Shown: positions 1 through 62,700 of the stretch, piece after piece
Position numbering within the stretch: the stretch's first letter is position 1
Layout of the letters: every line of letters begins with the position of its first letter
From: Mizuhopecten yessoensis
Lineage: Eukaryota
Direction: 5' to 3'
Assembly: GCF_002113885.1 (NCBI RefSeq)
Contig: NW_018408922.1
Coordinates: forward strand, 1,113,144-1,177,143
Length of the DNA: 64,000 bases
Notes under the pieces: model-generated
The model's database searches: none
Told to the model about the DNA's origin: nothing
Seen by the model: only the letters and a program-made list of their open reading frames with translations
Translations under genes and position numbers: made by a program

Positions 1-1257
1 TATGCATCAGATACGATAGCAAAGTGGTACGGTATGCATCAGATACGATGGCATAGTGGTATGATATGCATCAGATACGATAGCAAAGTGGTACAGTATG
101 CATCAGATACGATAGCATAGTGGTATGATATGCATCAGATACGATAGCATAGTGGTACGGTATACATCAGATACGATAGCATAGTGGTACGGTATGCATC
201 ATATACGATAGCATAGTGGTACGGTATGCATCATATACGATAGCATAGTGGTACGGCATGCATCAGATACGATAGCATAGTGGTACGGTAGGCATCATAT
301 ATGATAGCATAGGGGTACGGTATGCATCATATACGATAGCATAGTGGTACGGTATGCATCATAAATGATAGCATAGGGGTACGGTATCCATCAGATACGA
401 TAGCATAGTGGTACGGTATGCATCATATATGATAGCACATAGTGGTACGGTATGCATCAGATACGATAGAATAGTGGTACGGTATGCATCAGATACGATA
501 GAATAGTGGTACGGTATGCATCAGATACGATAGAATAGTGGTACGGTATGCATCATAAATGATAGCATAGGTGTACGGTATGCATCAGATACGATAGCAT
601 AGTGACACGGTATGCATCAGATACGATAGCTTAGTGGTACGGTATGCATCAGATACGATAGCACAGTGGTACGGTATGCATCAGATACGATAGCACAGTG
701 GTACGGTATGCATCAGATACGATAGCATAGTGACACGGTAGGCATCAGATACGATAGCATAGTGGTACGGTAGGCATCATATATGATAGCATAGGGGTAC
801 GGTATGCATACGGTATGCATCAGATACGATAGCATAGTGGAACGGTATGCATCAGATACGATAGCATAGTGGAACGGTATGCATCAGATACGATAGCATA
901 GTGGAACGGTATGCATCAGATACGATAGCATAGTGGGACGGTATGCATCAGATACGATAGCATAGTGGTCCGGTATGCATCAGATACGATAGCATAGTGG
1001 TACGGTATGCATCATAAATGATAGCATAGGGGTACGGTATGCATCAGATACGATAGCATAGTGGTACGGTATGCATCATATATGATAGCATAGGGGTACG
1101 GTATGCATCATATACGATAGCATAGTGGTACGGTATGCATCAGATACGATAGCATAGTGGTACGGTATGCATCATATACGATAGCATAGTGGTACGGTCT
1201 GCATCATAATTGATAGCATAGGGGTACGGTATGCATCAGATACGATAGCATAGTGGT
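1..1257. repeat. 32-bp minisatellite (consensus TATGCATCAGATACGATAGCATAGTGGTACGG), ~39 copies, running off the window start
   Basis: Head-to-tail 32-bp period read directly (units at 1, 33, 65...), with point variants only and no unique spacers. Confidence 0.97.
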
Positions 1258-1434
1258 AGTGTACAGTATGCATCTGAAACCATAAGGACTTCTGCTGATA
1301 GCACGCAAATTAAGTTATAGGTTTATGTTTCACATGATTAATCAACATCAGTAATTGTACTATGATGGGCTGGTTTTAAATATAGACATGTTTGGAATCG
1401 AAGTAATAATTGGAATGTGTTTCTCACGGACAGT

Positions 1435-1620
1435 CTGGGTGACATAGGACTAGTAGTTAGAGCCTGATAGGACAGCACCTGCGAATTCCTAAAATTATTA
1501 CAGATTAATTTATATGCTAATTGTATTGATTGTATAAATTGTATATCTACATGTATGTACTGTAAACCTCTTTAGAACGGCTTATTCTAACTAGATAGGG
1601 CGCTATATCAAATGTTGTAC
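1435..1620 (+). repeat. Dispersed repeat copy, probably the 3' tail of an L2/CR1-type LINE or related SINE
   Basis: Shares CTGCGAATTCCT...TTGTATATCTA...TGTAAA...GGCTTATT...CTAGATA...AAATGTTGTA with 11745-11920. The TGTAAA...CGCTATAT..AAATG ending is L2-tail-like. Confidence 0.55.
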
Positions 1621-2335
1621 ACTTTATTTTACTTATTCAATTAAGGAATTTGATAATAATTGTGTAATTGAAAAAAGTGTTTGTGCTATAATACGACCGA
1701 AACTTTAACAGTGACATAGATGTTAGACAATGCAGTCCTATTTGTCATAAAATGAATTCTGAAACAAAACAATCTTGATCTTAACTTCCTTATATATTTA
1801 TACATTTTGCGTAGGCTGACGCTAATATCAAATCTCCATGGGCGGTTGGTTTGATTGCTACAGTACATATTAAAATACCCAGAAAGACTATTCTAGTTAG
1901 TAGGATATGGACACTCAAACGTTATCAAACCATCGGGTCCGACTACTTTGAATTATACGTGATGCATTTACAAAATTGAAATTACCCGATGACCAATTCA
2001 TTGATATTATTCCGCACGTTGGGTTTTTCAGAAATATTCAGTAATCTAACAGTATTTGTTTCTGGCTAAACCTCATTGTCGAATGATAGGTACAGTAACA
2101 AAAGCAATCTGAATTAGCGTAAGATTATTTCACATTTTGGAGGTTTAAGGTCACAGTGAAATTATTTTTTAGAATTTATAAACATATGTGTATGTGTCAG
2201 AGGGTCACTACTAGTACTGCTTTTAAGGTTTACATCGAACTTATGTTTCTGCTTTTATAATATATAGCACAGGAGCTCGTTACGATCATTAGAATATATT
2301 GATCGAAACGAGGTCATGTACAGTGTATATGTAGG

Positions 2336-4151
2336 GTCATCCCCATACTTACGTCTTACTATCGTCTACTAATTACATATGTATATAACCTCCACATGTA
2401 CCGACCGGCATGTGTATAAAGTCATATTTATCACGTTAACCCGGTATGTTTACGCTCTCCTCAACGGAAGATGCACGCGTGATCAGTAGGTTAGATCTAC
2501 GCATCCTCTGGACCAATCGAGTACCGAGTAGGCGATATTTAATTTCAGACAGGTTTTAAGAAGTCATCCCCATACTTACGTCTTACTATCGTCTACTAAT
2601 TACATATGTATATAACCTCCACATGTACCGACCGGCATGTGTATAAAGTCAGATTTATCACGTTAACCCTGAATGTTTACGCTCTCCTCAACGGAAGATT
2701 CACGCGTGATCAGTAGGTTAGATCTACGCATCCTCTGGACCAATCGAGTACCGAGTAGGCGATATTTAATTTCAGACAGGTTTTAAGAAGTCATCCCCAT
2801 ACTTACGTCTTACTATCGTCTACTAATGACATATGTATATAACCTCCACATGTACCGACCAGCATGTGTATAAAGTCATATTTATCACGATAACCCGGTA
2901 TGTTTACGCTCTCCTCAACGGAAGATGCACGCGTGATCAGTAGGTTAGATCTACGCATCCGCTGGACCAATCGAGTACCGAGTAGGTGATATTTAATTTC
3001 AGACAGGTTTTAAGAAGTCATCCCCATACTTACGTCTTACTATCGTCTACTAATGACATATGTATATAACCTCCACATGTACCGACCAGCATGTGTATAA
3101 AGTCATATTTATCACGATAACCCGGTATGTTTACGCTCTCCTCAACGGAAGATGCACGCGTGATCAGTAGGTTAGATCTACGCATCCGCTGGACCAATCG
3201 AGTACCGAGTAGGTGATATTTAATTTCAGACAGGTTTTAAGAAGTCATCCCCATACTTACGTCTTACTATCGTCTACTAATGACATATGTATATAACCTC
3301 CACATGTACCGACCGGCATGTGTATAAAGTCAGATTTATCACGTTAACCCTGAATGTTTACGCTCTCCTCAACGGAAGATTCACGCGTGATCAGTAGGTT
3401 AGATCTACGCATCCGCTGGACCAATCGAGTACCGAGTAGGCGATATTTAATTTCAGACAGGTTTTAAGAAGTCATCCCCATACTTACGTCTTACTATCGT
3501 CTACTAATGACATATGTATATAACCTCCACATGTACCGACCGGCATGTGTATAAAGTCAGATTTATCACGTTAACCCTGAATGTTTACGCTCTCCTCAAC
3601 GGAAGATGCACGCGTGATCAGTAGGTTAGATCTACGCATCCTCTGGACCAATCGAGTTCCGAGTAGGCGATATTTAATTTCAGACAGGTTTTAAGAAGTC
3701 ATCCCCATACTTACGTCTTACTATCGTCTACTAATGACATATGTATATAACCTCCACATGTACCGACCAGCATGTGTATAAAGTCATATTTATCACGTTA
3801 ACCCGGTATGTCTACGCTCTCCTCAACGGAAGATGCACGCGTGATCAGTAGGTTAGATCTACGCATCCGCTGGACCAATCGAGTACCGAGTAGGCGATAT
3901 TTAATTTCAGACAGGTTTTAAGAAGTCATCCCCATACTTACGTCTTACTATCGTCTACTAATGACATATGTATATAACCTCCACATGTACCGACCAGCAT
4001 GTGTATAAAGTCATATTTATCACGTTAACCCGGTATGTTTACGCTCTCCTCAACGGAAGATTCACGCGTGATCAGTAGGTTAGATCTACGCATCCGCTGG
4101 ACCAATCGAGTACCGAGTAGGTGATATTTAATTTCAGACAGGTTTTAAGAA
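2336..4151. repeat. 227-bp tandem satellite, 8 complete copies
   Basis: GTCATCCCCATACTTACG recurs at 2336, 2563, 2790, 3017, 3244, 3471, 3698 and 3925. Copies are near identical. Confidence 0.97.
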
Positions 4152-7100
4152 AAACAATTCTACTTGCGGGGGTCAAATTCTGGGTTAAAAATCATGATTT
4201 TTTGCATATTTTGGTGTTTTTTGATATGGTAACGATGGTTTTCAGAAGTCCCAAATCTGGGGAAATTGCTTTTTGAAAAAAAAAAATGTTCTTCTAAAAA
4301 ATACCTATTAAACATGTAGTTTATGAATATATATATATATGTAGGTGTGTTGTGCAGGATGATTCCGCTATCCATGTTTATCCGAGAGATGCCATTTATT
4401 TTTAGGGTCAAGCCATTTCTACTGTACTCTGCCACCCCAGTGTCGTAGCATACATGCATGCTTGTATGCTCAAACATACACTAACACTTTCAAGATTTTT
4501 TATTCAAGATATCTTTATACATTTCATTTTTCATGATTAATATGGACCGTCCGTATCAATCATAAAAAAGGAAAGAAATGACAAGAATCTTCTTGAAAAT
4601 TTTAGTCTGCTAAAATAGTGTTGTTATGTTATGTCTATACACATTGACAAATCATCAAGATCTATGTAAATCAAAAACTACTTAAAGAAGTATAATATTA
4701 AACTGTATTCATATAAAAAGATCGGATTTTCATTGTTAATAATCAAAATAAAAGGAAGTCCCAGAACATGGGAGATTGCTGCTAGGGCCTAGAAGATTTT
4801 TTTTTCAGCTAGCATTCCCCCTATTCCGGCGCTATGCGCCTAGGACGGTCGACCGTCAGAATACACTCCGAAAAATGATTAGCTACGTCACTCTGACCGA
4901 GAGACGCCCATATTACCACTCTAAAAAATAATCTGCTGTTAACTCCACGTATATTTTCGTCTCTTCAGATGATTTTTATTTTTGGCCATTATTTTTCTTT
5001 TATTAAATCGACCATTTCCCTCTCCGTTGTATGATGTATTGAGTGAGTGTTAATAATTTCTCGTTTGGCAATGGTGCTTTTTCAGCGTCTCTTTGTTTTG
5101 TATTCATATAATCTATCGTACTGTTGCATGTGACTATCATTTGTATCGTCTATGACAAGGATGTGTACCCCACCTTTGTTGTTATAAAAAAGCAGAAGTC
5201 AATTTTACTTCTGATCTGTGTATGATTCAATTATTAAACCTATCATTTATTAAATGATCATTTTGCAACAATCACAGATTATTAGTTGTTTTCGTCACAG
5301 ATAACACTTCAACAAAAACAAGATTCGGTATCTTATTTTGTTTTGCAGACAAAGATAACATTTCAGTTCAAAGTAAAGGTGATTCCAAAATCGTCTATAA
5401 GGTGACAATGCAATTAGTAAAACAATGTACTTAAGACATATAATAGGATGCATTGTTATACCAATATCACATAAAATATGTAAGATTTTCGGAACAAACA
5501 TATAAAATAAGTTTCAATTAAATTCAAATATGCTATCCGATTAAAATATGAAATTGCACTTACGAAAAATTAAATCTTTCACATCTCATCACATCTAAAC
5601 AGTAACCATTTATAAAAGCGGAGGCATTTCAAACGTCGATTTATTTAAGTTGTTATAGTGGTATGCATCTGAAACCATAAGTTATTTTGCCGGTGTAATA
5701 TTGTTCGCAAATGACATAAAAATAAACAAATTAAAACTGAGTGAAAGTATATATACAAAATCTTACCGGCGTTGGTGTATCTATCAACTGGAGACATTCA
5801 TCAAACGGCATCTGTCGGAATTTGTATGTTGTCCCCAGTCTGTCCGTTATTTAACCTAAAGACTACTACCATATGTGAACATGTTCGCAAGTGTTTTCTT
5901 AAAACTCTTTATTTCTTGTAATCAAACAGTGACAACTTTGATACGAATAATAAGGAAGATATTAATGTTTATAAACATTAAGTATACATTGGTTTCAAGT
6001 GATATCGTTAAAGCGTACATCTCCTTTCACCGGAAATGGTACATCGTTGTTGAGATGATTACTGACAGATCTAGAGGCCTTTGTAAATAAGATTGAATCA
6101 GTTACAACCATTGGTGATAAGTGCTCTCTGAAGTACTTGAAGCCCCATTTCTGCCAAATACGAATCGGCGTTTTAAACTTTTCTTTCCGAGAAAATGTTA
6201 ACGATTACGCGGCAAACGAATTGCCTACCTATCAGAAATGAGCAAGACCTTCATCATCACTGGTATTTAAGTATAGCTGTAAGTATCAGGTTCTAATATA
6301 GTGTCGTTTCTGGAAACTCTATTTGTTTTAGTTTTGTACACATTTTATGCTAATTTCAAACTAGCACTGTTTAAGTCAGTCATCCTCGGTACTCCAGGGG
6401 TTACACTGACTTACACTGTCTGAACCCTGGAATATGTCATGACGAAATTAAAGGCAGCTACACTGTATTGTATTAGACTAAGGTATGAAAAAAAAACAGA
6501 TCAATTTATAGGCTGATATCTATCCTCTGAAGATTTCCGAGGAGCGACACCAGACTTCAAAGCCTGTCAATTGAATCGTTACGCCTCCGCACGGTCCTTT
6601 TGCTGTTCATCAAGCGTTTGTTTTTTCATAGATGTGTTACTATGCTGAAGTCGAAACGATTTCGCCACCGCCTCTTAAACACCCTTCATATGCATCAGTT
6701 TATAAACATGTAAGTCGCGGTGAATTTCTCCATTCACATTACGAGCCATGAATACTACTACCCATAAAATCAAGCTTCTTGCGACGTCCATCTTAAGCCT
6801 TACATTGTCCTCGGCCGACCACTTTTCTTCTACATGTATCTTTATCCATATTTTGTTATTTTGCTAATATTTGACACCGTTACATAGGGTACATGTATTG
6901 TGTACACTCACATGCATTCGTTTTGATTTCTGTTTTCTACATAAATGATTATTGAAATTTTACACGTAGTAGTTAAAAAGAACTAGACATATTTAATCAC
7001 AAATATTATATCTTATAAAACTAAGTAATTTCCATCCGTATATTGTTTTGCGACGTTATAATAAATATACAGAGGATATTTTTTTTTCCCTTGAATACCA

Positions 7101-7236
7101 TACATATTTTACGCGTATGAATATCAACATTTTTCACTGGTACAAAGTGCCAAATTTTGTAGCGCGTAGTATTTGACGCCAGGTTCTAATGACGTCACGC
7201 TTGACAACAAAACTGAGTGTCGTTTTGTTAAGCATC

Positions 7237-7349
7237 GAACTGTTTTTGTATGGTATTTATGATCTATTTGAATGACACAGCTTTGCAAGCAAACAACATA
7301 ATGCGCGCTATGATTCAAATAGATCATAAATACCATACAAAAACAGTTC
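7237..7349. repeat. Perfect 37-bp inverted repeat with a 39-nt spacer (hairpin or non-autonomous DNA element core)
   Basis: GAACTGTTTTTGTATGGTATTTATGATCTATTTGAAT (7237-7273) is the reverse complement of 7313-7349. Confidence 0.9.
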
Positions 7350-7930
7350 AATACTTATATTTACGTTTTCTCTGCCTCTTATGTTCTTTTTTAACTTATA
7401 ATTTATATTTAAAATTAAAAATGCCCGCCTTATCGACAGTCCACACAATTTCGTTCAATAGTTTGAACAGCGTATTGTCGTGTGCTGATTGGCAAACAAA
7501 GTAGTACTTTGAAATTTTAACAAACACTTCAATTTTATTCCACAATTCAGTATCAATACAATTGCGTATGATATGTCTATAGGGTGATTTAAGTTTATCA
7601 ATAGAACTCTGAGCTGAAAGTAATATTTGAAATTGTTTCGATTTTTCCCCGAAACAAATTTCGCGCATGGACAAATACAGTGAACACCGTAAATCCGACC
7701 TTGCCCTCCACGAGGGAGTTATTTTTGGAAGTTAATTCGAACTTTTCTCTTTGCTCATTTTGTGAAGAATCCAGGCGTGAATTTATTTGTTGATTGTATG
7801 GGAACCTGACAACAGTCGGTAGATTCTATAACAGCCTCGTTATTTGACATGTCGTCAGAAACTGAGGAACCGTGGATGCGAGACGCGTGAAACTGATAGC
7901 GTTTGAAGTGAGTGATCTTGCGACGGAGCA

Positions 7931-8052
7931 CAGGTTCGTTACAAATGTCTGAAATGTTTATGTGTGCTGTGACTCATATCAGTAGGTCTGTAACATATGT
8001 GTCAGTAGGTCTATAGAATATGTGTATTTCAGACATTTGTAACGAACCCCTG
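7931..8052. mobile_element. Short MITE with ~25-bp terminal inverted repeats
   Basis: CAGGTTCGTTACAAATGTCTGAAAT ... ATTTCAGACATTTGTAACGAACCCCTG. A related copy lies at 45477-45880. Confidence 0.75.
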
Positions 8053-10759
8053 TTGATCAGTGCAGTGTAACAGACGATATTTCTGATAAATTGCATATGC
8101 GTTAAAATTGTTTCCATTGCCGGCATTGGTGATTTCAACCGATGTGCATTTTGTACGATATTGCAGACATTGGTCTTGTTTTCGTTGCAATAAAAGTGTT
8201 TTTATTTTATTTTTTTATTTTGCACATAAATTTACAATGGCATTGTCAAATCTCACAATGCCCAGCGATATTTCAGCAGCCGTCATGCTTATTTATATTG
8301 GATATTGTAGTTCCGGTCAGTATTGTATTAGTACGCTAAGAATTGCGTCTCGTGATGCATGGTAATTAAAGTCCCATCAACGACACAGCTTTCAAAGAGG
8401 CTATATAGTGACAATGCCATGCAAATGTAAATATAATGGGTTGTTCAACACAATTCTTCCGTTTGCTGCTTTCATGTGATTTCCACAAAAATGATATTAT
8501 TTGTGTTGTTACATAATATATGTTAAAAAACAACGACTTATTCTGCCGCCGCTTCATCACCACTTAAAATTGAAAGTCTACGCAGTAAATATACCGTTCT
8601 GATTTGACAATATTTATGTGATATCTTCACATGTGAAGATATAATATGTCGTATGCCTTTCAGTGAAGATATCAGCCTTTAACAATTGATAATTCATGAT
8701 GTTTAATAGTTAGAATGTAATAAAGTGTTTCAATTTTTGGAACCTGGAGATATGTATAAAAATGTTCTTCTCATAGGATAAAAACGTTATGAGAGGTGAA
8801 GGTGACACACACATAGATATAAAGGTTCTAACGAGAGCTAGTTAATTTTCATATTGTACGAAGACATTAGGTAGACTGAGTGCCTTTTACAATTTGAAAA
8901 AGATAACAAAAGAAAGTGAAAAATATGTACATATGATAACCAATCATCGCGTGTTTTGTGATTTGTTTCTCCGATAACGTTCTTATTCTATCTAGAAAAA
9001 CGTGTAGGAGAAGACAAGGGACCACATTCATGCTGATTAGTTATAATGTTTATTCAACTCTGTTAGGTGAATTCTGAGAAAACATGCATTAACAACATAT
9101 TTTGTGGGAGAAGTAAAAAAGACATGAAATAATTTGCCAAAATTTCAAAATACAATTAAGTAAATACAAAAATGATATTGTAAAATTTATAAAACAGTTG
9201 CAAAAGTTTCATTTATATAACACTTTATGATTTTTTTTTTATTAAAGCTCTTTAAAGATGAACAATATCTCTTTCTGTCACTCCTGACTTCGTTTTTGGT
9301 CTTTCTTTCTTTCTTTACATGTTCTCCTCTGTCACCAAAGCACCGTTTCCCTACTTCTCTATCATAATCAATTAACCATATTAAGTATAAGGAATACAGC
9401 TAGATTGTGTGGTTGATGCCTCGAATAACCTTTCTTACGACATATATGAATGCATTTTTTGAACAATATACCAGTGTACAGTAAAACCTTTTGATATCAA
9501 TACGTGTAAATGTACGACAATTCGGTTCAAATCATACAAATCTTTCGTAACTACTCTATATATCATCATTACGGCATTTGTTTGGACAATCACCAACGCG
9601 TTAAAGGATGTTTTACGAAATGATTTCATATTTGTTGTCAGACTTTGAATAAATGTCAGAAAATTATCATCTAAGTCCCCGGAACAAGATATATCCAAAG
9701 ATAAATTGTAGCTTGACAATTATTTTTTAAACATGACATTTGCTCGTCCTTTATGATATAACAAACCTGATAATATACATAGGTTGTCTTTCTTCAACTA
9801 TTTAACGCGGGTATTGACACAATGCAATATATGATATAGGGTATCTTGTCTGGAGGAAATGATTTCACGAGATTATTGAAAAATTGCGCCTTTTTCATGT
9901 TTGTGTGAATATCCATGTCTTTAAAAGACAACAAATGGGAAGAAGGCACATATCCTTTTGTAAATAATCGAACTTCCCTTCAATATACTTATCTAGATTC
10001 GAGATTCGACAACAAAACCCCCCAGAACGGGTGAAGTGAAGTCAGGAAAACAAATACCCTTGCAGTGCAAGCGGATTGCCCATTTGTTTTGTGTGTGTTC
10101 ATGATGACCTCCGTGCGCGTTGATGTTATGGTATGGTACTTTTTTCCAACAATGACTAAAACCTTTACAGTTACTGTATTTTACTCAGAAATGTAATAGG
10201 ACATAATCCATTCAAATGACATTTAGTTGTTAAATATAAAAGAATGACACGTCTCGCTCCACTTAGCGATTTGCATATAACAACACAACGCAAATATCTT
10301 TTTTTGCCTCTAGCTCACAGAAAGGACGTATGGCGGTGGGCGTTTAATCAGTATATGTACATGCACAACATTACTAATAATCCATGACAAAAACCAAAAT
10401 GCAATCAAAATACATATATACAAATAACCCCTCGTACATATACCGATAGTTAACAGCTTGCCGTCATCTGACGTGAAAAAAACATTTACACCGCAGTCTG
10501 ACGTTGACTGCGCGAAACGACAATAAAGAGACACCTCGATCATCGAAATCAACCTGCACGCCCAGGAAAAACCGGAGATATCCCCCGGAAAACGGTAACC
10601 AAAAGCGGGACAAATATTATTTCCCTGCAAGTCCGATTTCTCTGACGTGACAGTTGGACCGCTGTCTTCTCTTCTATAACAGACCTACTGAACCACCCTA
10701 AGAAAAAAAACGAAAAAAAACCTATCCATCCTTAAGTTTAGAATGAATCGTACGCTTAC

Positions 10760-52486: not shown

Positions 52487-53284
52487 AGAGGGCTTCACTG
52501 TACAAGTGTGTTTAGATAAGTTAAAGCTACTTTGATAATTTATTCTTATTTACATATCTGTATTATCTTTTAGATTTTGCAATAAGTGTACACACAGGCA
52601 CCGATCACTTTTCAAATTTGATTATAGACACAACGGACGTTTTGTCCATGTACAGCTACACCAAATATTCTGGTGACATGAATTGGCGATTTCCTAACTT
52701 GGCTATTTTTCAAATAAATCTTGGCAAAAATGACTTCTTACACAGGATAACTTAATGTCTATATTGTCACATTGATCTAAGTTCCTTAAAAATGTATAGT
52801 AAATACATTGTACATATATGTGAATTTCTAATTTGTTGTCTATTTGTTTCAGTGTTTTTGAAAAGTTCGTGTTCATGTAATAACAAACAATACATATTAT
52901 TATGTTCAAACAACAAACGCAAATTAACTGATATATGTATTCTGAGTTTTAGACACACATTATTTATATAGAGTATTAAGCGTTTATGAGGAATACAGAA
53001 TCAAAGGGAAGTTTGAATGGATAGTATATGTTGTATGTTACGGAGATTCAATTTTGTATATGTGTTTTCAATACCTTTTTTTGTGGTATTTGATGTTTTG
53101 GAAAATTAATAAAACATTGTGCAACAAGCTTACAATGTTTAACATAAAATACTGAATTAGAATATCTTTATTTGTTTACATATTTCTCTTATGATAAGAT
53201 GTTTATTAAACTTGTTGACAACCTCTACCACACATGGAAACATTGTTGCATTGAAAAAAAAAATCATTTATTTTATTTTATAAT

Positions 53285-53554
53285 AATATAATAATAATAC
53301 TAAAGGCTTTATTTATTCTTGACATCATATTGAGCATGAAGTTCATCTTACATATGGTCAAGATACAATGTATGATAAAATGTACAATATTTACAGCTTT
53401 AAGAAATATACATGTATAAAATACAGGATAAAAGAGGAAATCATAAATCATTTCAAGTAAAATTGCTTTGCAGATCTCTTAAATTCTTAAAATGAAGTAC
53501 AATTTCTAATGTGACTTGATAAAAGATTCTATGCAAGGGGTCCCTGATATTTAA
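53285..53554 (-). mobile_element. 3' end of a decayed CR1/L2-type LINE (continuation of 59260-59745)
   Basis: Minus-strand translation YQGPLA*NLLSSHIRNCTSF*EFKRSAKQF is the typical ORF2 C-terminus. It is followed by AATAAATAAA and an ATT-rich tail. Confidence 0.8.
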
Positions 53555-55120
53555 GGAGGAACAGGGTGTTATTTGTAAAAAAATCTAGTCAATTAATATT
53601 TTTCATTTTTTCCACATACATACATTTAGTTGTCCTCTGTAACATATTATAATATTATGGTCACTTTCTTGATATATAAGGGAGGTAATTCAATTTTAGT
53701 TATCTCCCTTGTCACAAAATTTTCAATATTCACAACAAAGTCATTTTCAACTGTATAAAATTTATTTTTCAAAATTTTCAAACACATTTTTCGAAAGTTA
53801 GGACAGAAGACATATTTTTCAAATGCAAAATGATAAATTTGAGTTTTGATTTTGGTAAATCTACCAAAACAGGAAAAAAATGACAAAATTTGGCAAATTT
53901 TGCATTTTCTAACAGGGTAAACTGGCAATTATTTTGAATATATCCTGAAAATCTGTCATTTAATAGTTTTTGAAACACTAAAATTATAAAGTCATTTGTA
54001 TTGTAAATATTTGATAGGAATATGAGATCATGTTTCTTTCTTACTTTTTAGTCTACAGAGTTGGGAATATAAAGACATGCTGCTGGAATGGTGCTATTTT
54101 TAGAACAGATTGTATATGAATGAGTTACAATTGTACATATGAACAAGATGTGTATTGCCAACACAGTCCCTTTCAAGGAGGACAAGTACTTCTGTAGTAT
54201 ATACGACCTTAAATCTTGAAATATGACCTTGACCTGATATAGTTTTGACCTTGACTTTCACTTGACCAAATTTGAAGTCTCTATCTCATGTATCGAGATA
54301 TAACCTTAAACTTGAAATATTACTTTGATCAATATATTTGAAAACATGGTTCGCACACATTTTAATTATCATTGAAAAAGATGTCAAAATAAAAAAATTA
54401 AATAAAAACTATGTAAAAAGCCTTTAAAAACCTTAAAAATCAGTAACTGTCTTGACAAACCCTAAAAACTAATGAAAACACTGTTATATCAAGGTTATGA
54501 TGCCACTTTGTGCATAAGATTTAAAGATATTTAAAAAATAAACGGTCGTGAAATGAATAAATGGTCGTAAAATGTATAAAACAAAATAAAAACAAACAAA
54601 AATGTGAGGGGGTATAATATTCCGGAAATCATCTACCGGCTTCTGTTTCCAATACTACTGATACTATTCCGGGTCATTATTACGTTTGATACCTTTGGTG
54701 TCCATACTTTAAATTTGAAGCTTCTTCGCGATAAAGATTAGGAAAAAACAATTGGACGAGCCGCATTCTGAACGAACAGTACGGTCAGAATAGGGAAAGT
54801 GTGCATTTAATCGGAAGTGGCTTGCGATCAATGGTTCGCCAGACCGACCAGAGAATTTAAAGGCGTCAAGGACGTGGCAAAATGTATCGTTCGCAACCTA
54901 GGCAAGATGGGGGAGCATGCATTACTGCTACAAACAAACCATTCTGTGGGCAAGCGATTCGAGCCCAGATTCGTTTTTTTTTTAAAGGAACACGCTAATA
55001 CTCAGCCTACGAAAACCCCCGAAACTACAGCGAATGCTTTAAGTACGTTTCTCGGTTTCAGCTAATGCTCGTGCTGCTGGTGACAAAGTGATTTTGTCGC
55101 TCTTAATAATTAGGTCCAGT

Positions 55121-55318
55121 ACACTCTGTCGGTTGAGCTATATAGCTATATCCATATTTAAATTATAGCTGCATTGTGCTATTTTTTGATTTCACATTTG
55201 AATTTTCATTAAATTGCAGCAAAGTCGCATAAAACATCTATTGAGGTTGCATTTCATGAAAATAGCTAAAAAAAAGCAGGTAGGACTTTACAGCTATATA
55301 GCTCAACCGACAGAGTGT
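55121..55318. mobile_element. MITE with 27-bp perfect TIRs nested in the Kolobok-like element
   Basis: ACACTCTGTCGGTTGAGCTATATAGCT (55121-55147) pairs with AGCTATATAGCTCAACCGACAGAGTGT (55292-55318). Confidence 0.8.
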
Positions 55319-55319
55319 G

Positions 55320-55880
55320 TAAAACCTGCTAATACTCAACATGTACGTGCTGAAACACTTTTGACTCTTGATTTGCAAACAGTAAAACAGTTCTTTGACA
55401 TTTCTAAATTATTTCCCCTCATGTTTCCTGACGGTAACATTGCGAACAAATTCACATGTATATTATAGCTGCCTTCAGAACAGCAGAGCATTTGTTAGTG
55501 AATGATCAGAAGATAAATACTCAGTTCTTTTTGACAAATTGCTTGACTCGCAGGCTAATAAACACATGGTTATGCATGTAATGTTTGATTTTTGGATGAA
55601 GAGGAAAATTTTCTAAAAACAAGATATTTTGATTATCAATTTCCTGGTCATGCCACAGCAAATGACATGTAACTCAAGAAGGTGTTATTCATAGTGAACT
55701 GAATGCAACTGCAAGTAAGCTAGTGCAGATTGGAATGGATGGACCCAATGTAAATTTCATTAACTCATTTCTGACATGTTAAAAACTGATTTTAACAATA
55801 CATTATTACAAGTGTACCATAGGATCATGTGGTCTTATTATAAACTATTCATAGCAGATTTCAAGCAGGAGGTGTAGCCA
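55320..55880 (+). pseudogene. Decayed hAT-like transposase fragment inside the Kolobok-like element
   Basis: Broken frames give VRAETL, KLFPLMFPDGNIANKFTC, KTRYFDYQFPGHATAND, KLVQIGMDGPNVN and IGSCGL, motifs of a hAT-type transposase family as I recall them. Confidence 0.6.
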
Positions 55881-55924
55881 TTCTTGAATTATTTGGGCTA
55901 GACACCAATATACATATTAGGTTA

Positions 55925-58900
55925 TCATTCCTCTTTGTTTGTTAAGAAACTTGTGACAGCCTTGACAGTTTTTGCATTAAATCCATGCTCTGACAACACA
56001 TATCTCAGTCCATTTTCAGTATCTCTCTTGAATGCTAACTGAAGGTGTCTCAGGCAAAGTCCACATTGTGCTAATCGCCTAGCTGTTGGTTTGGTGATAA
56101 GAGATGCTCTCATTAATGGGGTGAAAGTGTCCGTCAATGCTGTCACATTGAAAGCAAAAATATCTTTTTCAGAATAGTTCAGCTGTCCAAGAAGTTCATG
56201 AAGACTTGTTACATCAGCACTTGCATCATGTGCATCATATTCTTTGCCAAGTAATTTTGAAACAAGATTCTGTTGCTTGTAATTTCCAACTTCACTTTTG
56301 CTAAACTTTCTTCTCGCTAATTTCAATGTGTCAATGCAGCCTGTTATATGTTGAAGAAATTCTGACAGCAAATGACTTTCTTGTAACTTTTTCAGTAAAA
56401 CTGGTACATCATAAGCTGCAATGTTATGACCAAAAAGGATTGGTTTCTTCTTCTTACTAAGGTACTCGATGAAGTCCAACAAAACAACACGAACATCTTT
56501 ACTGATGACTGGTTTTCCATGATGATACATCTGGTTTGAATGGAAATCATAAGTCAATCCTGTTATAGAAGAAGCTGTTGCAGATACTTTTTGGCATGGC
56601 ATTATGTACTGATTAAAAATGTCGCTGCCGTCGTATGCTGCCAGCTGAGTAATGTCAGAGTTCCTTGATAAACCTGTAACAGAAACAATGGAACATAAAT
56701 TTGTTTTACTATGATAGCACACAGGGTAGGTTTTACTTAACAAGCCAGATATATATTATGGTGCCTGGTTTATATGCATGGTAAAAAGCAGTTTGGAGAG
56801 GGGAGGAGGGATTGAGAATGATTTTTTTTTTTAAATTCAACAGACAACAATAATGGATTGAATGTAATATAACTCACATGGTCCTTTCATTTATACAAAT
56901 ATGATAAAGCACAATATTTTGTCTTTATTATTACCTGTTGTTTCTAAATCAAACACTACTGCAGATTCTTCACCAGTAAGTTTGATCTTGGAAGGAATTG
57001 TCTCTGTATCTATTTGTCCTTGGACTTCGATTTCCACTCCATAAGTATCGCCCTCCTTCACAGATTCTCCCTTATCATGGCAAACCTTCTGAATCTTTGT
57101 AAAATGCAGAAAAATGAAACTTTGTTCAAACATTTCGTCAAAATAATATGCAGGAAAATGGTGTATTCAGTCTTGGTACAATTCACTCAAAACTAGACAT
57201 TTGTATTTAACTATTTTGTTTGTTTGACAAAAAAAACACTTTGTTTTACAGGTCAGGCTGACTATTTTAACAAGTTTATTAGAATTGCAANGTTTAGAAG
57301 CCTGTCTGTTCTATCTTTGTATATCTGTGTCAGCTTTTGTAATTCCTCTTTCAACATGTCTCCAGATAGTGCCTTTCCATTTGGTAAATGTTTGTATCTG
57401 TAAGGCGTATTGAATATAACGATAGAGGATAAATTTGTTATTTCATTTCTATGAGTCAAGACCTATAAGTATATGTAAAGAAAGATGCAATAAAACGTTT
57501 TTAGACAAGCTAATACACTGATGATCCATCAATTACTGTTGTATTAATAATAACTGTATGTGTAATGTAGCTTTTGAAACGATTTTCAAATAACCATGTT
57601 CTATAACGTGGTGGCTATGTCATATATTGGGGGAAAAAAATGAATTTTTTTTAAAGGAAAGTACTGCAGAACCATTCAGAATAAATAAGATGTAGATAAA
57701 TTCCTATAAAATGGTGTTACTATATAAAATGTAAACAATATAATAATTATTACCTGAACTTTGCTGGATCCTTATTATATGTGCACCAGGATGGTGAGCA
57801 CAGAGAACACAAAGCTGACTTCCAATCCATCAGAGACTGAACAGTCAAGTTCCTCCTTCTGTGCATCATTACAAGATGTTTCTGCAGCACTTATGACTAC
57901 TGGGGCAAGTTTCTTCTGTATTTTGCGTAGTGTAGAGGCATCTACAGGAGGTATGTTACAACCAGAAAGAAACTTAACCACTTGATTGGGTCCCATTCCT
58001 GCATTTAACATAGCTGAAAAATGGAAGGTTATATTAATTTAGTTCAAATTTAATCATACTGTAAATATCTAGAAGGATTATCAGCATTTTGAATAACATG
58101 CTTATTATGTATAAACAATTGTTATACTTATGTGTATATAATTATAAGGCCATACATAAAATAGTGTTTGTTTCCTCCTCTATCTATAGCTACATACCCA
58201 CCAAAATAGCCCCTACAGAAAAATATTGTACTGACATTTTCCAGAAAGATATCTTTTTTATATTTGTTAATTGTTTAAAAAAAAATCTCACCATGTATTC
58301 TGTTTGAATTTTAATTACTTACAATATAAATAAAAATAAAATTGAAAAAATAAAATAATTTCCTTACCAACCTACCCATGATTTTATGATTTGTAGCTTG
58401 TATTTAATACCAGAGCTAAAATCAAATGCCAATGTTGTATTTGTGTACATAGTGGATTTTGGATTTTAGCTCAGGTATTAAATACCAGATACAAGTGCCA
58501 GCTGTGGTTAAACTAACTTATAATTTGAGTGGGGGAAACTCTTTCTCTCTCTCTGGGGCGAAATATCTTATAATAGAGAAGCTGAGGCCAAACTGGAAAA
58601 GGACCGAATCGTCTTGCACAGAAGATAGAAATCACATGAAAAGAAAAGAAATCAAGAAAGATTAGGTTTTGTTACTTACCTAGATACACTTTGGAGTTGA
58701 CGTCAAAGCCTTTGTTTGAATTTCGTTTTCCTGTGGGTACCAAGTTGACATGCTGGCATGCACTGTTCGGACATGATATGTAAAGGTAACTTGCCATACC
58801 GTAAATTACCTCGTCAACAATGTCAACAAACCTAAGCCACGAATTGCATTTGGCACAATTCATATTTTCGGACAGCACTGCTAGCTCAACCACCCTTCGT

Positions 58901-59157
58901 CCCTGAAACCATGGTTTCGTTGGTCCGATTTCCACGTTCTCGCTGACATGAATATCTCGATCTTGAACGGTGTGTGATGAAATAGTACTGTCAAGTCTGT
59001 GTTGTGGAATCGCCACATAATCGTGGTCTTGGTTGCTGGTACTGTAACTCTTCTCGTTCAAAAAACGCATATTTTCTGACCTATTCACAGTCCCTTTCTT
59101 TGCCAGTCTTCCCTTTACCCTGATATAACGGCGACTACCGCATCTGTCGTCTGCCAT
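55925..59157 (-). CDS. Spliced transposase-DEDDh exonuclease fusion gene of the Kolobok-like element (transposase core deleted, exonuclease intact)
   Basis: Exons 59157-58680 (GRRVVEL, CAKC, CPNSAC), 58013-57754, 57397-~57291 (N gap), ~57110-56935 and 56673-55925. The GT-AG junctions are phase-compatible (YL-A-MLNAG; KF-R-YKHLP; DLETT-G-LSR). Exo I FDLETTG, Exo II GHNIAAYD, IDTL, Exo III AHDASAD. Confidence 0.82.
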
Positions 59158-59184
59158 ATTTGTTTACCTCGGCTTCCTGACATT

Positions 59185-59243
59185 TGTACTTCCGGTTCTA
59201 TTTTTATGATTGCGGTCACGTGATTTTTCAAAATCACGTGACC
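59185..59243 (-). promoter_or_regulatory. Candidate transposon promoter: palindromic twin E-boxes plus an ETS site
   Basis: GGTCACGTGATTTT-TC-AAAATCACGTGACC (59214-59243) is a perfect 14-bp-arm palindrome with two CACGTG. ACTTCCGG at ~59188. Both lie between the TIR and the ATG at 59157. Confidence 0.55.
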
Positions 59244-59259
59244 ACTACCCTGCTTCCCC

Positions 59260-59745
59260 TTAAAAGATTTTCTAAAAATGTTTGTCTTATGACATGGCAA
59301 GTAAAACACATTGGTAGATGATGATCTTGTAGTTCTACCCTGAACATCAGACATATACGTAAAAATCATTCAAATTTTGTGGAGCTAAATTATTAAGTAT
59401 CATGTACATAAAAAACTACTTGATTGTATAACAATTCTTTTTTGAAAGGTAACCAATTTAGTTTTTTGAACATATCACAGGAAGGTGTGGAAAAATCACA
59501 TTTTAAAATAAATCTGGCTGTTCTCTTTTGCAGGCGTTCTAATTTTACAATATTATTTTTTGAACTGTTACACCAAACAGTTGAGCAATAATCCAGATGT
59601 GTGTTAACAAAGCAGTTAAAAAAGGTCATACAAGATGACTGGCTCAAATAGGGTCTCAACTTTTGAATCTGAATAATTTGACATGATATCTTTTTGCAGA
59701 CATTTGTAAATTGAATGTTCCAAGAGAGACAATCATTTTATAATA
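59260..59745 (-). mobile_element. CR1/L2-type LINE ORF2 C-terminal fragment, 5'-truncated and frameshifted
   Basis: RPYL..FVNTHLDYCSTVWC..KLERLQKRTARFIL..MFKKLNWLPF, then TTRSSS..FYLP..KTNIFRKSF. These are hallmark post-RT motifs. Confidence 0.88.
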
Positions 59746-62700
59746 ACTCTTTTAAAATGGATAATATATTAGTATATTCAGAAACCGATGACCGCTCTAA
59801 TTTAACCCTGGTTTGTAAATATTTTAAAACGCTGTTACACTTGTATAATTGTTATTTTGGGAAAGGGCCTAGTAAGTTGTAAGAACTTGTGCCCAATTCC
59901 TTTGACTACACAGCGTCAATAAACTATGGTTGAATGAATTGGATCAATATTTAACTGCCTGTTTACAGATGTGGTTTAGTCCGTCTTATTTGTATATTGG
60001 ACAAGTTACACATTTGGTAGGTAGAAACAATAAACATATCTTAAATTTATTGTTTCTTATGACGGCAATAGTTCCACAAGCTTTGTTTGAGTTGTTTAAA
60101 TTCAAATGCAACCTGTTTCAGAATAAATCTTTGTAATACCTTTTATTACATACCTGGAGAGGAGAGCATTATTATGTTGATACAGTCCAGGCCATGCATT
60201 AAAAGGTTATGCATTTCAAGCTGTGATAAAAAATACAATAGATTACCCCTGTAACCGTACTTCATTTTATGATGGAACTAGTCGGTTGTTGTCCACTAAT
60301 TAAATCAACAAAATCGAAACAGTAACGAGATTCAAAAACATGAATCTCCATTTCAGGCCAAGGAAGTACAACGTGACGTCATTATTTCGTCCTCGACGTC
60401 ATTTTGACCACTATTGTTGTTTGGTTATTAATTTTTTCGGACAGAAAATTGAACATTAAAATGAAGTGATGATTGATGATTTGAAGGAAATGTATTCATA
60501 TGAAAAAAATTCTAAATATGTTATGAAAAAAAGCAATACATTTATGTTCGTCTGACGTCTAATAGGACACTCGTTTATTGTGTGAATGAACATACTTCTT
60601 TCGGGTTACAGCCCTCGTGAACACCCTCGTGGAATATATCCATACTCGCAACGCAATCGGGCGATCCGAATGTTTTGTAACTTGGTGAACATTCAATGAT
60701 GCATTGTAACAGTTTCAAAATTGATATTCAACTGCACGTGACAATGTTCTTTTATGATCTCCAGTTAGTTTTATCTATTTTTGATTATGTTTATAGGATC
60801 TTCCTTTTCGTTGTTTCTATTTAAGCAATAACTGATATTACTATGCATAGCATATACTCTAATTCTGCTTTTTTTGTAAAAATCTATTCAACCAGCTTTA
60901 AATTGTTATACATTGTATGACTTGTTTCAGAATAAAATCTCTATAACCTATTTTTATGTATTGGTGTCTTCATTATTTTTTCACAGATTCAAAGTCAGAA
61001 TTGCTTTAAGTCGCTGAACGCTTAATACACCATTGTAAGTCACCGTAATCACTATCGAAATACAATTAGTAAACTGCGCTTTAGTCATACCTTTATTTTA
61101 CATATATATCATAAAAGAATTGAATAAACTTTAAATCTGCTGTGAAACATGAAATGTTTAGAGAATTTTTTCTTCGTTGATTGAAGTTATTTAGATCATT
61201 TCGTGGTGCAAACTTTCGTAGACACTCCAAATAAATAAACAGTGGCAAAGTTTATCAATTAATTATTTTGTAGTCATTTTCGTAGTTTGACAGCAACCAG
61301 GAAAACCGCGAATGTTTATTCACAACGAATAGTTCATGTTAAACAATGTACGGATTATTTACTACTGGTATAAAATGCATTTTTATAGTAAGACACATTT
61401 GAAATAAACAATTATACTGAAAAATCAATCTTAAGGTGGTATACCCATTTTCAAACAAAGTAGTGTTATCAACAATCACAACAAAGTGTAAAAATAAAAT
61501 CTGAGTATAAAAAGACCAGTAAGTACGTAAAAGTCAGTGATGGATAATTGACGCATCAGTTGTTGACGTGATAACTCGCCTAAAAATGAAACACATGACC
61601 GATCGGCCAGACGTCTAGTACGTGTAAAGGTAGGCTTAGGTCCAAATACCGGAGTCGGGCTCCGCTTGTATTCGATACCGTACGGCAGGACATATCCGTG
61701 GGGATGACATTTCGCGATTTCGCCGGTCAAGAACGTGATCGCGAAAATATAATTCACAGAATAATAAGACAAGCGTTATAGCCGCGATAATGAACTACAT
61801 AACCATAATTTCGTCGTGAAACAGCGAACATGTGGTTGTGACGATCTGTATTGATATAAAGTAATAATGTTTGAAAATAGGTTATATCCCACACCAAATG
61901 GTTTTGTTAATGATTGATTTAACAAAATACATTCACTTGTTGCTGATCAATATGCTGTCATAAAGCTTTATCATTTGAATACGTGACAATTGATATGCCG
62001 AGCGTCCACCAGTCCCTGTGCTGATAAACCAAGAGAGTGCAGTTCCTTCACAGGTCTAGATCGCGAAATTATAATCCCCGTAAATTTAATTTTCTATTTG
62101 TTTTTGTTAAACCCGTAAACTGAGTCTTACAATAATTGTAGAGACATTGTCAATCTCTGGATAACCTTTGGTAAGATCATTGATTTATTCATGTCATATT
62201 TACATTAATTAAACCATTTCAACCTTTTCACAAAAAGGTGGTTTTAGCTAAAAAAAGAAAACTGGCTGGAATGGCTGTATATGTTTGCACGAATTAAACG
62301 TATGTATCAATTAATATTTGTATTCATGTACATCATGTATATACACGATTGAATAATAGAAATTAAAATGGATGATAAATTTGGGTCTTCCAATGTTTTC
62401 AAGTGAACAATGGCAAAAAAGGTGACCATACAGATGTGCATTGAGGCCAGAATGCTTAACTCCGTCTATCCTATGGTGACGTTAGACGGAGCTACACGTA
62501 CTTGCTAAGAAAAAAACAGCGCCAAGAGAATACCGAAGTGTCAACAGAACCATAATACGAACTCAACATTGATAAAACTAGGGCAATATATAAGCATAGG
62601 AAATAATTACAGGGATACCCTAGAAAAAGTACAAGGATAAATCACCAGGTGCTACGAAAGGGTTAACGTCTTCTGCTTCACCGATAACACCTGCCCTGTA

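Follow-up and report, generated by a model that had tools for sequence, protein, structure and literature searches.

The question raised by this locus is whether a transposase and an exonuclease that lie side by side in a scallop mobile element are the product of one transposon gene. The stretch analysed (the window) is the 64,000 nt of Mizuhopecten yessoensis DNA at positions 1,113,144 to 1,177,143 of contig NW_018408922.1, and the element lies at 53551-59263 within it. An earlier sequence-only reading of the window described a Kolobok-like transposon with a continuous five-exon gene in which a zinc-finger transposase N-terminus runs into a PML/TREX1-like DEDDh exonuclease. Our data suggest a somewhat different answer. 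The element is very probably a young, internally deleted and non-autonomous copy of a low-copy, KolobokD-type cut-and-paste transposon, and the fusion, of 852 amino acids, is encoded by the full-length form.

Boundaries of the element and its copies in the genome

The element is a DNA transposon with terminal inverted repeats (TIRs), and direct reading of 53300-59500 shows TTAA on both flanks. The TTAA target-site duplication (TSD) is at 53551-53554 on the left and at 59260-59263 on the right. Next to these are the left TIR GGAGGAACAGGGTGT (53555-53569), which, with respect to the gene, is the element's 3' end, and the right TIR ...CTACCCTGCTTCCCC (59245-59259). The element therefore starts GGAGGAACAGGGTGT... 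and ends ...CCCTGCTTCCCC, giving an imperfect TIR of about 15 bp in which 10 of 15 bases match. The termini are of the type GGAGG... / ...CCCC, that is 5'-RR..YY-3' with GG..CC.

The whole element and each of its 150-bp ends were searched against the scallop's own genome (988 Mb, 82,659 contigs). There are 14 distinct left ends and nine distinct right ends, and the flanking DNA is different for every one of them. TTAA precedes 11 of the 14 independent left ends and follows seven of the nine independent right ends; the ends with no adjoining TTAA belong mostly to older, diverged copies. Because the same ends recur in distinct flanks and mostly adjoin TTAA, chance does not account for the boundaries, the GG..CC termini or the TTAA duplication; all are real, and on these points the sequence-only reading was correct.

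The family is low-copy, and several copies are 99-100% identical to each other, which points to recent activity. It is young and probably still active, with an intact master copy present. There is also a miniature derivative of 0.62 kb (G000:C4949:389201-389823) that has both ends and a TTAA on each side.

An intact copy encodes a transposase-exonuclease fusion

The intact member of the family is at G000:C5594:943326-952172 (locus L031, in which the full element spans 1005-9843) and is 8.85 kb in length. It has nine exons (E1 to E9), all open and in phase, with a total of 2559 nt, corresponding to 852 amino acids and a stop codon. Within this assembly L031 is the only copy in which all the exons are open: exon 4 is broken in a copy in C2148, and L036 and L033 are largely N, the assembly being a draft with many gaps. 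The searches were made exon by exon, and continuity of the frame was taken from the exon lengths and the translation of each exon, and not from a joined protein.

Four parts make up the L031 protein. At the N-terminus is a zinc-finger, DNA-binding part, followed by a Kolobok DDE catalytic core into which a CCHC finger is inserted; a basic linker then leads to a C-terminal DEDDh 3'-5' exonuclease that ends in a SAM-like (PML_C) tail. Exons E1 to E4 cover positions 1-357 of the Pfam model PF20700, and the finger in E3 (C-x2-C...H-x-C) directly follows SFDAGW, which holds the first catalytic D.

Splice data for L031:3790-9780 (5,991 letters) came from four runs: contigs of two RNA-Seq libraries, a probable RNA run and a run of raw reads. 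For seven of the eight introns (E1|E2, E2|E3, E3|E4, E4|E5, E5|E6, E7|E8 and E8|E9) there are GT..AG joints on the minus strand in contigs from RNA libraries. The gene is transcribed and spliced.

Several points weigh against a KolobokD gene that encodes a fusion. None of the four runs examined shows the E6|E7 joint, and one contig is unspliced from E7 through intron 6 into E6; retention of this intron would end the transposase seven codons later. The RNA-library contigs also include unspliced sequence, and the raw-read RNA run X23 gives almost no cover (three reads only). Transposase-only and exonuclease-only products may therefore exist. Finally, membership of KolobokD is supported by shared features and by a colinearity judged by eye (see below) and not by a tree of the DDE core.

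The missing joint and the unspliced contig would be explained if transposase and exonuclease were made as separate proteins, the transposase ending after E6 by retention of intron 6 and the exonuclease beginning at a downstream start. The fusion would then be an annotation construct. The non-canonical GC donor of E6|E7 fits this explanation, as do RefSeq models such as P0001, which has 304 amino acids and consists of E8 and E9 only. However, the donor of this GC-AG intron is AAG|GCAAGT, which is a classic strong context for a GC donor, and the GC is also kept in a 75-80% diverged copy. The frame through E5 to E8 is open only with the E6|E7 join. Additionally, six bivalve homologues from different families (P0035, P0045, P0050, P0054, P0105 and P0116) are continuous across the equivalents of E4 to E9 and match the E6|E7 junction residue for residue. 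P0045 is a 563-aa open reading frame (ORF) on a 2.9-kb Logan contig, and P0035 has PF20700, RNase_T and PML_C in one chain. Because these six homologues read through exactly at the predicted junction we accept the E6|E7 joint, and we consider it improbable that the two enzymes are separate proteins. Judging from the homologues, the transposase-exonuclease fusion is one conserved chain in other bivalve families.

One further contig deserves mention. Record 14 of run X5 (L031:3790-6170) is a 2.5-kb RNA-library contig that lacks intron 7 (4551-4755) only and retains introns 5, 6 and 8. Either incomplete splicing of an RNA or a genomic variant lacking this intron could account for it.

The window copy is internally deleted

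In the copy in the window the gene runs on the minus strand. This copy shares 98.6-99.9% identity with L031 but has a length of 5.7 kb in comparison with 8.85 kb. Exon E1 (58680-59157) holds the start codon together with the N-terminal zinc finger of the transposase, CxxC...CxxxxCxH (CAKCNSW, 58837-58857; CPNSACQH, 58750-58773). It matches PF20700 positions 1-76 (E 2.1e-8) and its end is given by the E1|E2 RNA joint. Together, exons 1 and 2 of the window match PF20700 ("Mutator-like transposase") at positions 1-141 of 357 only. The second of these is a fused remnant of E2 and E4 (57754-58013), and it is followed by a remnant of E5 (57292-57397), found by tblastn, that has the first 35 of 56 codons.

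The exonuclease is better preserved. Exon E8 (56935-57094), bounded by the RNA joints E7|E8 and E8|E9, contains the linker and the first exonuclease motif, FDLETTG (D-x-E; 56933-56953), and is 100% identical to L031. The last exon, E9 (55925-56673), the acceptor of which is fixed by an RNA joint, contains most of the DEDDh exonuclease (HNxxxxD and HxxxxD, here GHNIAAYD at 56408-56431 and AHDASADV at 56210-56233), the PML_C/SAM-like tail and the stop codon. Its product has 100% amino-acid identity to that of L031. The helical tail at 56021-56080 falls inside the match to PML_C (PF25244, E 2.7e-16). The zinc-finger N-terminus, the complete DEDDh domain with all three motifs and the helical tail that had been read from the window are thus all present. 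The continuous five-exon gene that was thought to join them is not.

There are two gaps in comparison with L031. In the first, 1817 nt of L031 are replaced by five filler bases (57805-57809), a loss that includes both catalytic D residues together with exon 3, most of exon 4 and the last part of exon 2. Because this loss changes the length by 524 nt net, there is a frameshift and a premature stop at 57775-57777, after 238 codons. In the second, blastn against L031 shows that 1313 nt are absent at a junction (57289-57291) two bases from a single N at 57291; the missing piece holds the end of E5 with the catalytic E and the two linker exons, E6 and E7. The 1817-nt joint is found with the same five letters in a contig of the independent run X5, so this deletion is real. 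The 1313-nt junction is seen in none of the four runs compared with L031 and could be either a deletion or an assembly gap.

If both missing segments were assembly collapses, the window copy would be full-length in the animal. The 1313-nt segment abuts an N and its junction is in no run, and L036 and L033 show how rich in gaps this draft assembly is. The 1817-nt junction, on the other hand, is in run X5 with identical letters, is free of N, and has filler bases of the kind that repair typically leaves, which makes a full-length window copy very unlikely. The window copy is an internally deleted, non-autonomous derivative with no DDE core, and does not itself encode the fusion. The five filler bases suggest that the deletion probably arose by abortive (faulty) gap repair. 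Since both ends are kept and the catalytic core is lost, the copy would be mobile only in trans, by means of the full-length protein. The exonuclease exons in the window probably remain intact owing to the young age of the copy and not to selection on this locus.

The element has the architecture of KolobokD

The defining features of Kolobok transposons are the TTAA duplication and termini of the form 5'-RR..YY-3' (Kojima & Bao, Mob DNA 2022, PMC9587614). Within them, KolobokD is a lineage with a DEDDh exonuclease and a CCHC finger after the first catalytic D, and is found in molluscs, arthropods and cnidarians (PMC9587614). The scallop family has the TTAA TSD, the RR..YY ends with short TIRs, the DDE transposase with the CCHC finger in this position, and the DEDDh (DnaQ) exonuclease. 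Consistent with this, the L031 blocks SFDxGWQKRG, GHxxxIGxxTGK, CxxC..HxC, SSKxME, DNDxTT, FGDHSxC..WC and GSxQxNESxN are colinear with Kolobok-1/7/9_CGi, as compared by eye with the supplement text (Data S5 of PMC9587614). The Kolobok-type reading of the window is supported at the level of the family, and its caveat that the architecture may be known is right: this is the KolobokD architecture published in 2022 (PMC9587614), and here there is at most a new family. Among the papers searched, a single one names KolobokD.

In the related lineages KolobokE, KolobokP and KolobokH, too, a second DNA-processing enzyme is attached downstream of the Kolobok transposase. In these, however, the accessory is a PD-(D/E)xK nuclease, a His-Me finger nuclease or a RecQ helicase and not a DEDDh exonuclease, and KolobokP has long terminal direct repeats, which the scallop element does not have.

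Two other superfamilies were considered and rejected. The termini are GG..CC and not the CCC..GGG of piggyBac, and Pfam gives PF20700 and no piggyBac family. MULE/MuDR elements have an 8-11-bp TSD and long TIRs, in contrast with the 4-bp TTAA TSD and the TIR of about 15 bp seen here; only the Pfam name says 'Mutator-like'.

There are superficial grounds for taking the locus as a piggyBac or MULE element, or as a host 'PML-like' gene beside an unrelated insertion: TTAA duplication is common to piggyBac, the matching Pfam model bears the Mutator-like name, and RefSeq calls bivalve homologues 'protein PML-like'. The termini, the lack of a match to a piggyBac transposase and the sizes of the TSD and TIR argue against the first two. 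A host gene beside an insertion does not fit the other copies of the family. We looked for copies with no exonuclease inside the same termini, but in both L031 and the copy in C2148, which is 98% identical, the shared TTAA-flanked ends enclose the exonuclease. The exon order is also the same in older relatives, in C5556 and C5318, which have stops and 75-88% identity. Every copy that is complete enough (L031, L032 and the C5556/C5318 relatives) has the exonuclease inside these termini, and in other species it is in the same chain as PF20700. Neither a piggyBac or MULE element nor a host gene is a credible explanation, and we retain KolobokD.

As a transposon the element is ordinary, in that the KolobokD architecture has been published and the window copy is a dead derivative. 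What is gained is a model of a KolobokD gene with nine exons and RNA support, taken from a young family whose master copy is intact, and the demonstration that transposase and exonuclease form one conserved chain.

The exonuclease is closest to Plex9 and PML

The product of E9 matches the Pfam families PML_C (2.7e-16), Exu_RNase_H_like (4.8e-10) and RNase_T (1e-4). The last-exon product was also compared with the sequences in the PDB. The best match is zebrafish Plex9.1 (9MRC/9MRD), with an E value of about 5e-25 (4.6e-25 for 9MRD) and about 40% identity over 163 residues; over the EXO domain the identity is approximately 38-40%. It is followed by Exuperantia (9e-7) and TREX1 (1e-3 to 2e-3).

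We also used an AlphaFold model of P0001, a Mytilus homologue (E8 and E9 only, as above) that is 66% identical to the last exon of the window. The predicted local distance difference test (pLDDT) for this model is 81 and the predicted template modelling score (pTM) is 0.75, and there is a helical bundle at residues 232-301. In a Foldseek search with this model Plex9.1 comes first, with a template modelling (TM) score of 0.86 and a root mean square deviation of 1.3-1.6 Å; next is Exuperantia EXO + SAM (PDB 5L80), with about 300 columns aligned, and then TREX1/TREX2 (E 1e-8, TMt about 0.65). Across 15 homologues there is no variation in the catalytic H, N, D, H and D.

Taken together, the data show that the KolobokD-type exonuclease is much closer to Plex9.1 than to Exuperantia or TREX1. 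Of the PML/TREX1-like label given in the sequence-only reading, the PML part is upheld, in the form of PML/Plex9, whereas TREX1 is not the nearest relative. This closeness to Plex9/PML is a point beyond PMC9587614, which gives KolobokD a short paragraph and likens its nuclease to Exuperantia, TREX and ERI1; the PML_C/SAM-like tail and the exon structure with RNA support are also additions to that description. A literature search found no paper linking PML/Plex9 with Kolobok, and transposons are unmentioned in the PML papers PMC10123124 and PMC13659232.

The likeness to each of these relatives has its limits. Plex9.1 and the C-terminal DEDDh domain of fish PML-I (PMC10123124; 9MRC/9MRD) resemble the scallop module in sequence and fold and in all of the DEDDh residues, and the PML_C tail is common to PML-I, to a shark 'PML-like' protein (P0095) and to the scallop module. 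The scallop protein, however, has neither the RBCC/TRIM N-terminus of PML nor the synteny with the pml locus that marks Plex9. A Kolobok transposase forms its N-terminus; to this the module is joined, inside a multicopy mobile element of an invertebrate. Drosophila Exuperantia (5L80) shares the two-domain EXO + SAM-like layout and the Exu_RNase_H_like match, but it is an RNA-binding pseudonuclease with no DEDD residues and is much less similar in sequence. TREX1/TREX2 share the DEDDh 3'-5' exonuclease fold, but for TREX1 the sequence similarity is marginal and there is no SAM-like tail. The transposon exonuclease with its SAM-like tail is thus the closest known relative of the Plex9/PML exonuclease module.

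There is a consequence for annotation. RefSeq names several bivalve homologues 'protein PML-like', but because the exonuclease is fused to a transposase these are transposon genes and not PML orthologues. This is a warning for the many bivalve annotations of that name.

In rabbitfish (Siganus), P0049 has two Plex9-like EXO domains in tandem.

Possible function of the exonuclease

The element inserts at TTAA, duplicating the TTAA. Because the two enzymes remain one fused chain in lineages that are only about 30-40% identical, the exonuclease would most likely act inside the transposition complex. There its task would be to shorten 3' ends, either those of the element after excision or those of the broken donor or target DNA; this is the proposal of Kojima & Bao (PMC9587614).

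A different possibility is that the fused exonuclease has no role in transposition and would, like Plex9 or TREX1, break down retroelement cDNA or stray cytosolic DNA, either harming competitors or keeping the transposon, once excised, out of reach of DNA sensing. LINE-1 is restricted by Plex9 and by fish PML (Mathavarajah et al. 2023, PMC10123124), Plex9.1 is the closest solved relative of the transposon exonuclease, and the catalytic residues are intact. A covalent fusion that is conserved across divergent families, however, suggests action at the transposition complex. We therefore regard a defence-like role as unlikely, though less so than the alternatives set out above, and prefer a role in transposition.

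Origin of the PML/Plex9 module

PML has been reported as an innovation of jawed vertebrates. A maximum-likelihood tree of 38 EXO(+SAM) sequences is unrooted and has a weak backbone (81/89). Eight vertebrate Plex9/PML-like proteins form one group (97/96) that is separate from the group of the window and is attached amid invertebrate diversity. Transposase-linked sequences are found in two further parts of the tree.

Plex9.1 has the transposon module as its nearest solved relative; this module has the PML_C tail and is widespread and diverse in invertebrates. This allows a domestication reading, in which the EXO + SAM-like module of PML-I exon 9 and Plex9 (and perhaps of insect Exuperantia) came from a KolobokD exonuclease captured by a TRIM-type host gene in an early jawed vertebrate. 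We offer this tentatively, as an origin that is possible but on balance doubtful. Because the tree is unrooted, the direction of descent is not readable from it, and the capture may have run the other way, or both modules may go back to a shared host gene. If domestication were true, PML's C-terminal domain would be a domesticated transposon gene; the position of the transposon module as closest relative makes the origin of this domain testable.

A RefSeq isoform of a Mizuhopecten yessoensis gene, P0123, has a mitochondrial EF-Ts N-terminus followed by the EXO + PML_C module. This may be a chimeric transcript of host and transposon or else an artefact of annotation, and it would be a small-scale parallel to the proposed capture of the module by a host gene.

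Other features of the element

There is a perfect 30-nt subterminal palindrome at 59214-59243, between the right terminus and the ATG, which was found by direct reading and contains two CACGTG (E-box-like) boxes. The part nearer the terminus (from 59236) is conserved in every right end, the diverged ones included. The palindrome could be a promoter element or a transposase-binding site.

The 2.37 kb on the 3' side of the stop codon (53555-55924, read on the minus strand) is non-coding and colinear with the full copies L031 and L032. ORFs in 53647-55488 have no Pfam match and no usable Atlas match, and an Rfam scan of 53000-60000 gave no match. Short open pieces on the plus strand at 54817-55900 gave the impression, by eye, of a decayed hAT-like transposase remnant, but this was unsupported (nothing in Pfam or Atlas) and was rejected.

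Two hairpin-like inverted repeats are present. The first, at 55121-55318 in the 3' part, has 30-nt arms (97%) and a 138-nt loop. The second, at 58391-58494 in intron 1, has 36-nt arms (89%), and at the site of this hairpin the copy in C2148 has about 570 extra bases.

Just beyond the element, on the minus strand at 59393-59659, is an 88-aa ORF that by eye is like the C-terminal region of ORF2 of a non-LTR (long terminal repeat) retrotransposon. If this is what it is, the element has inserted into an older repeat.

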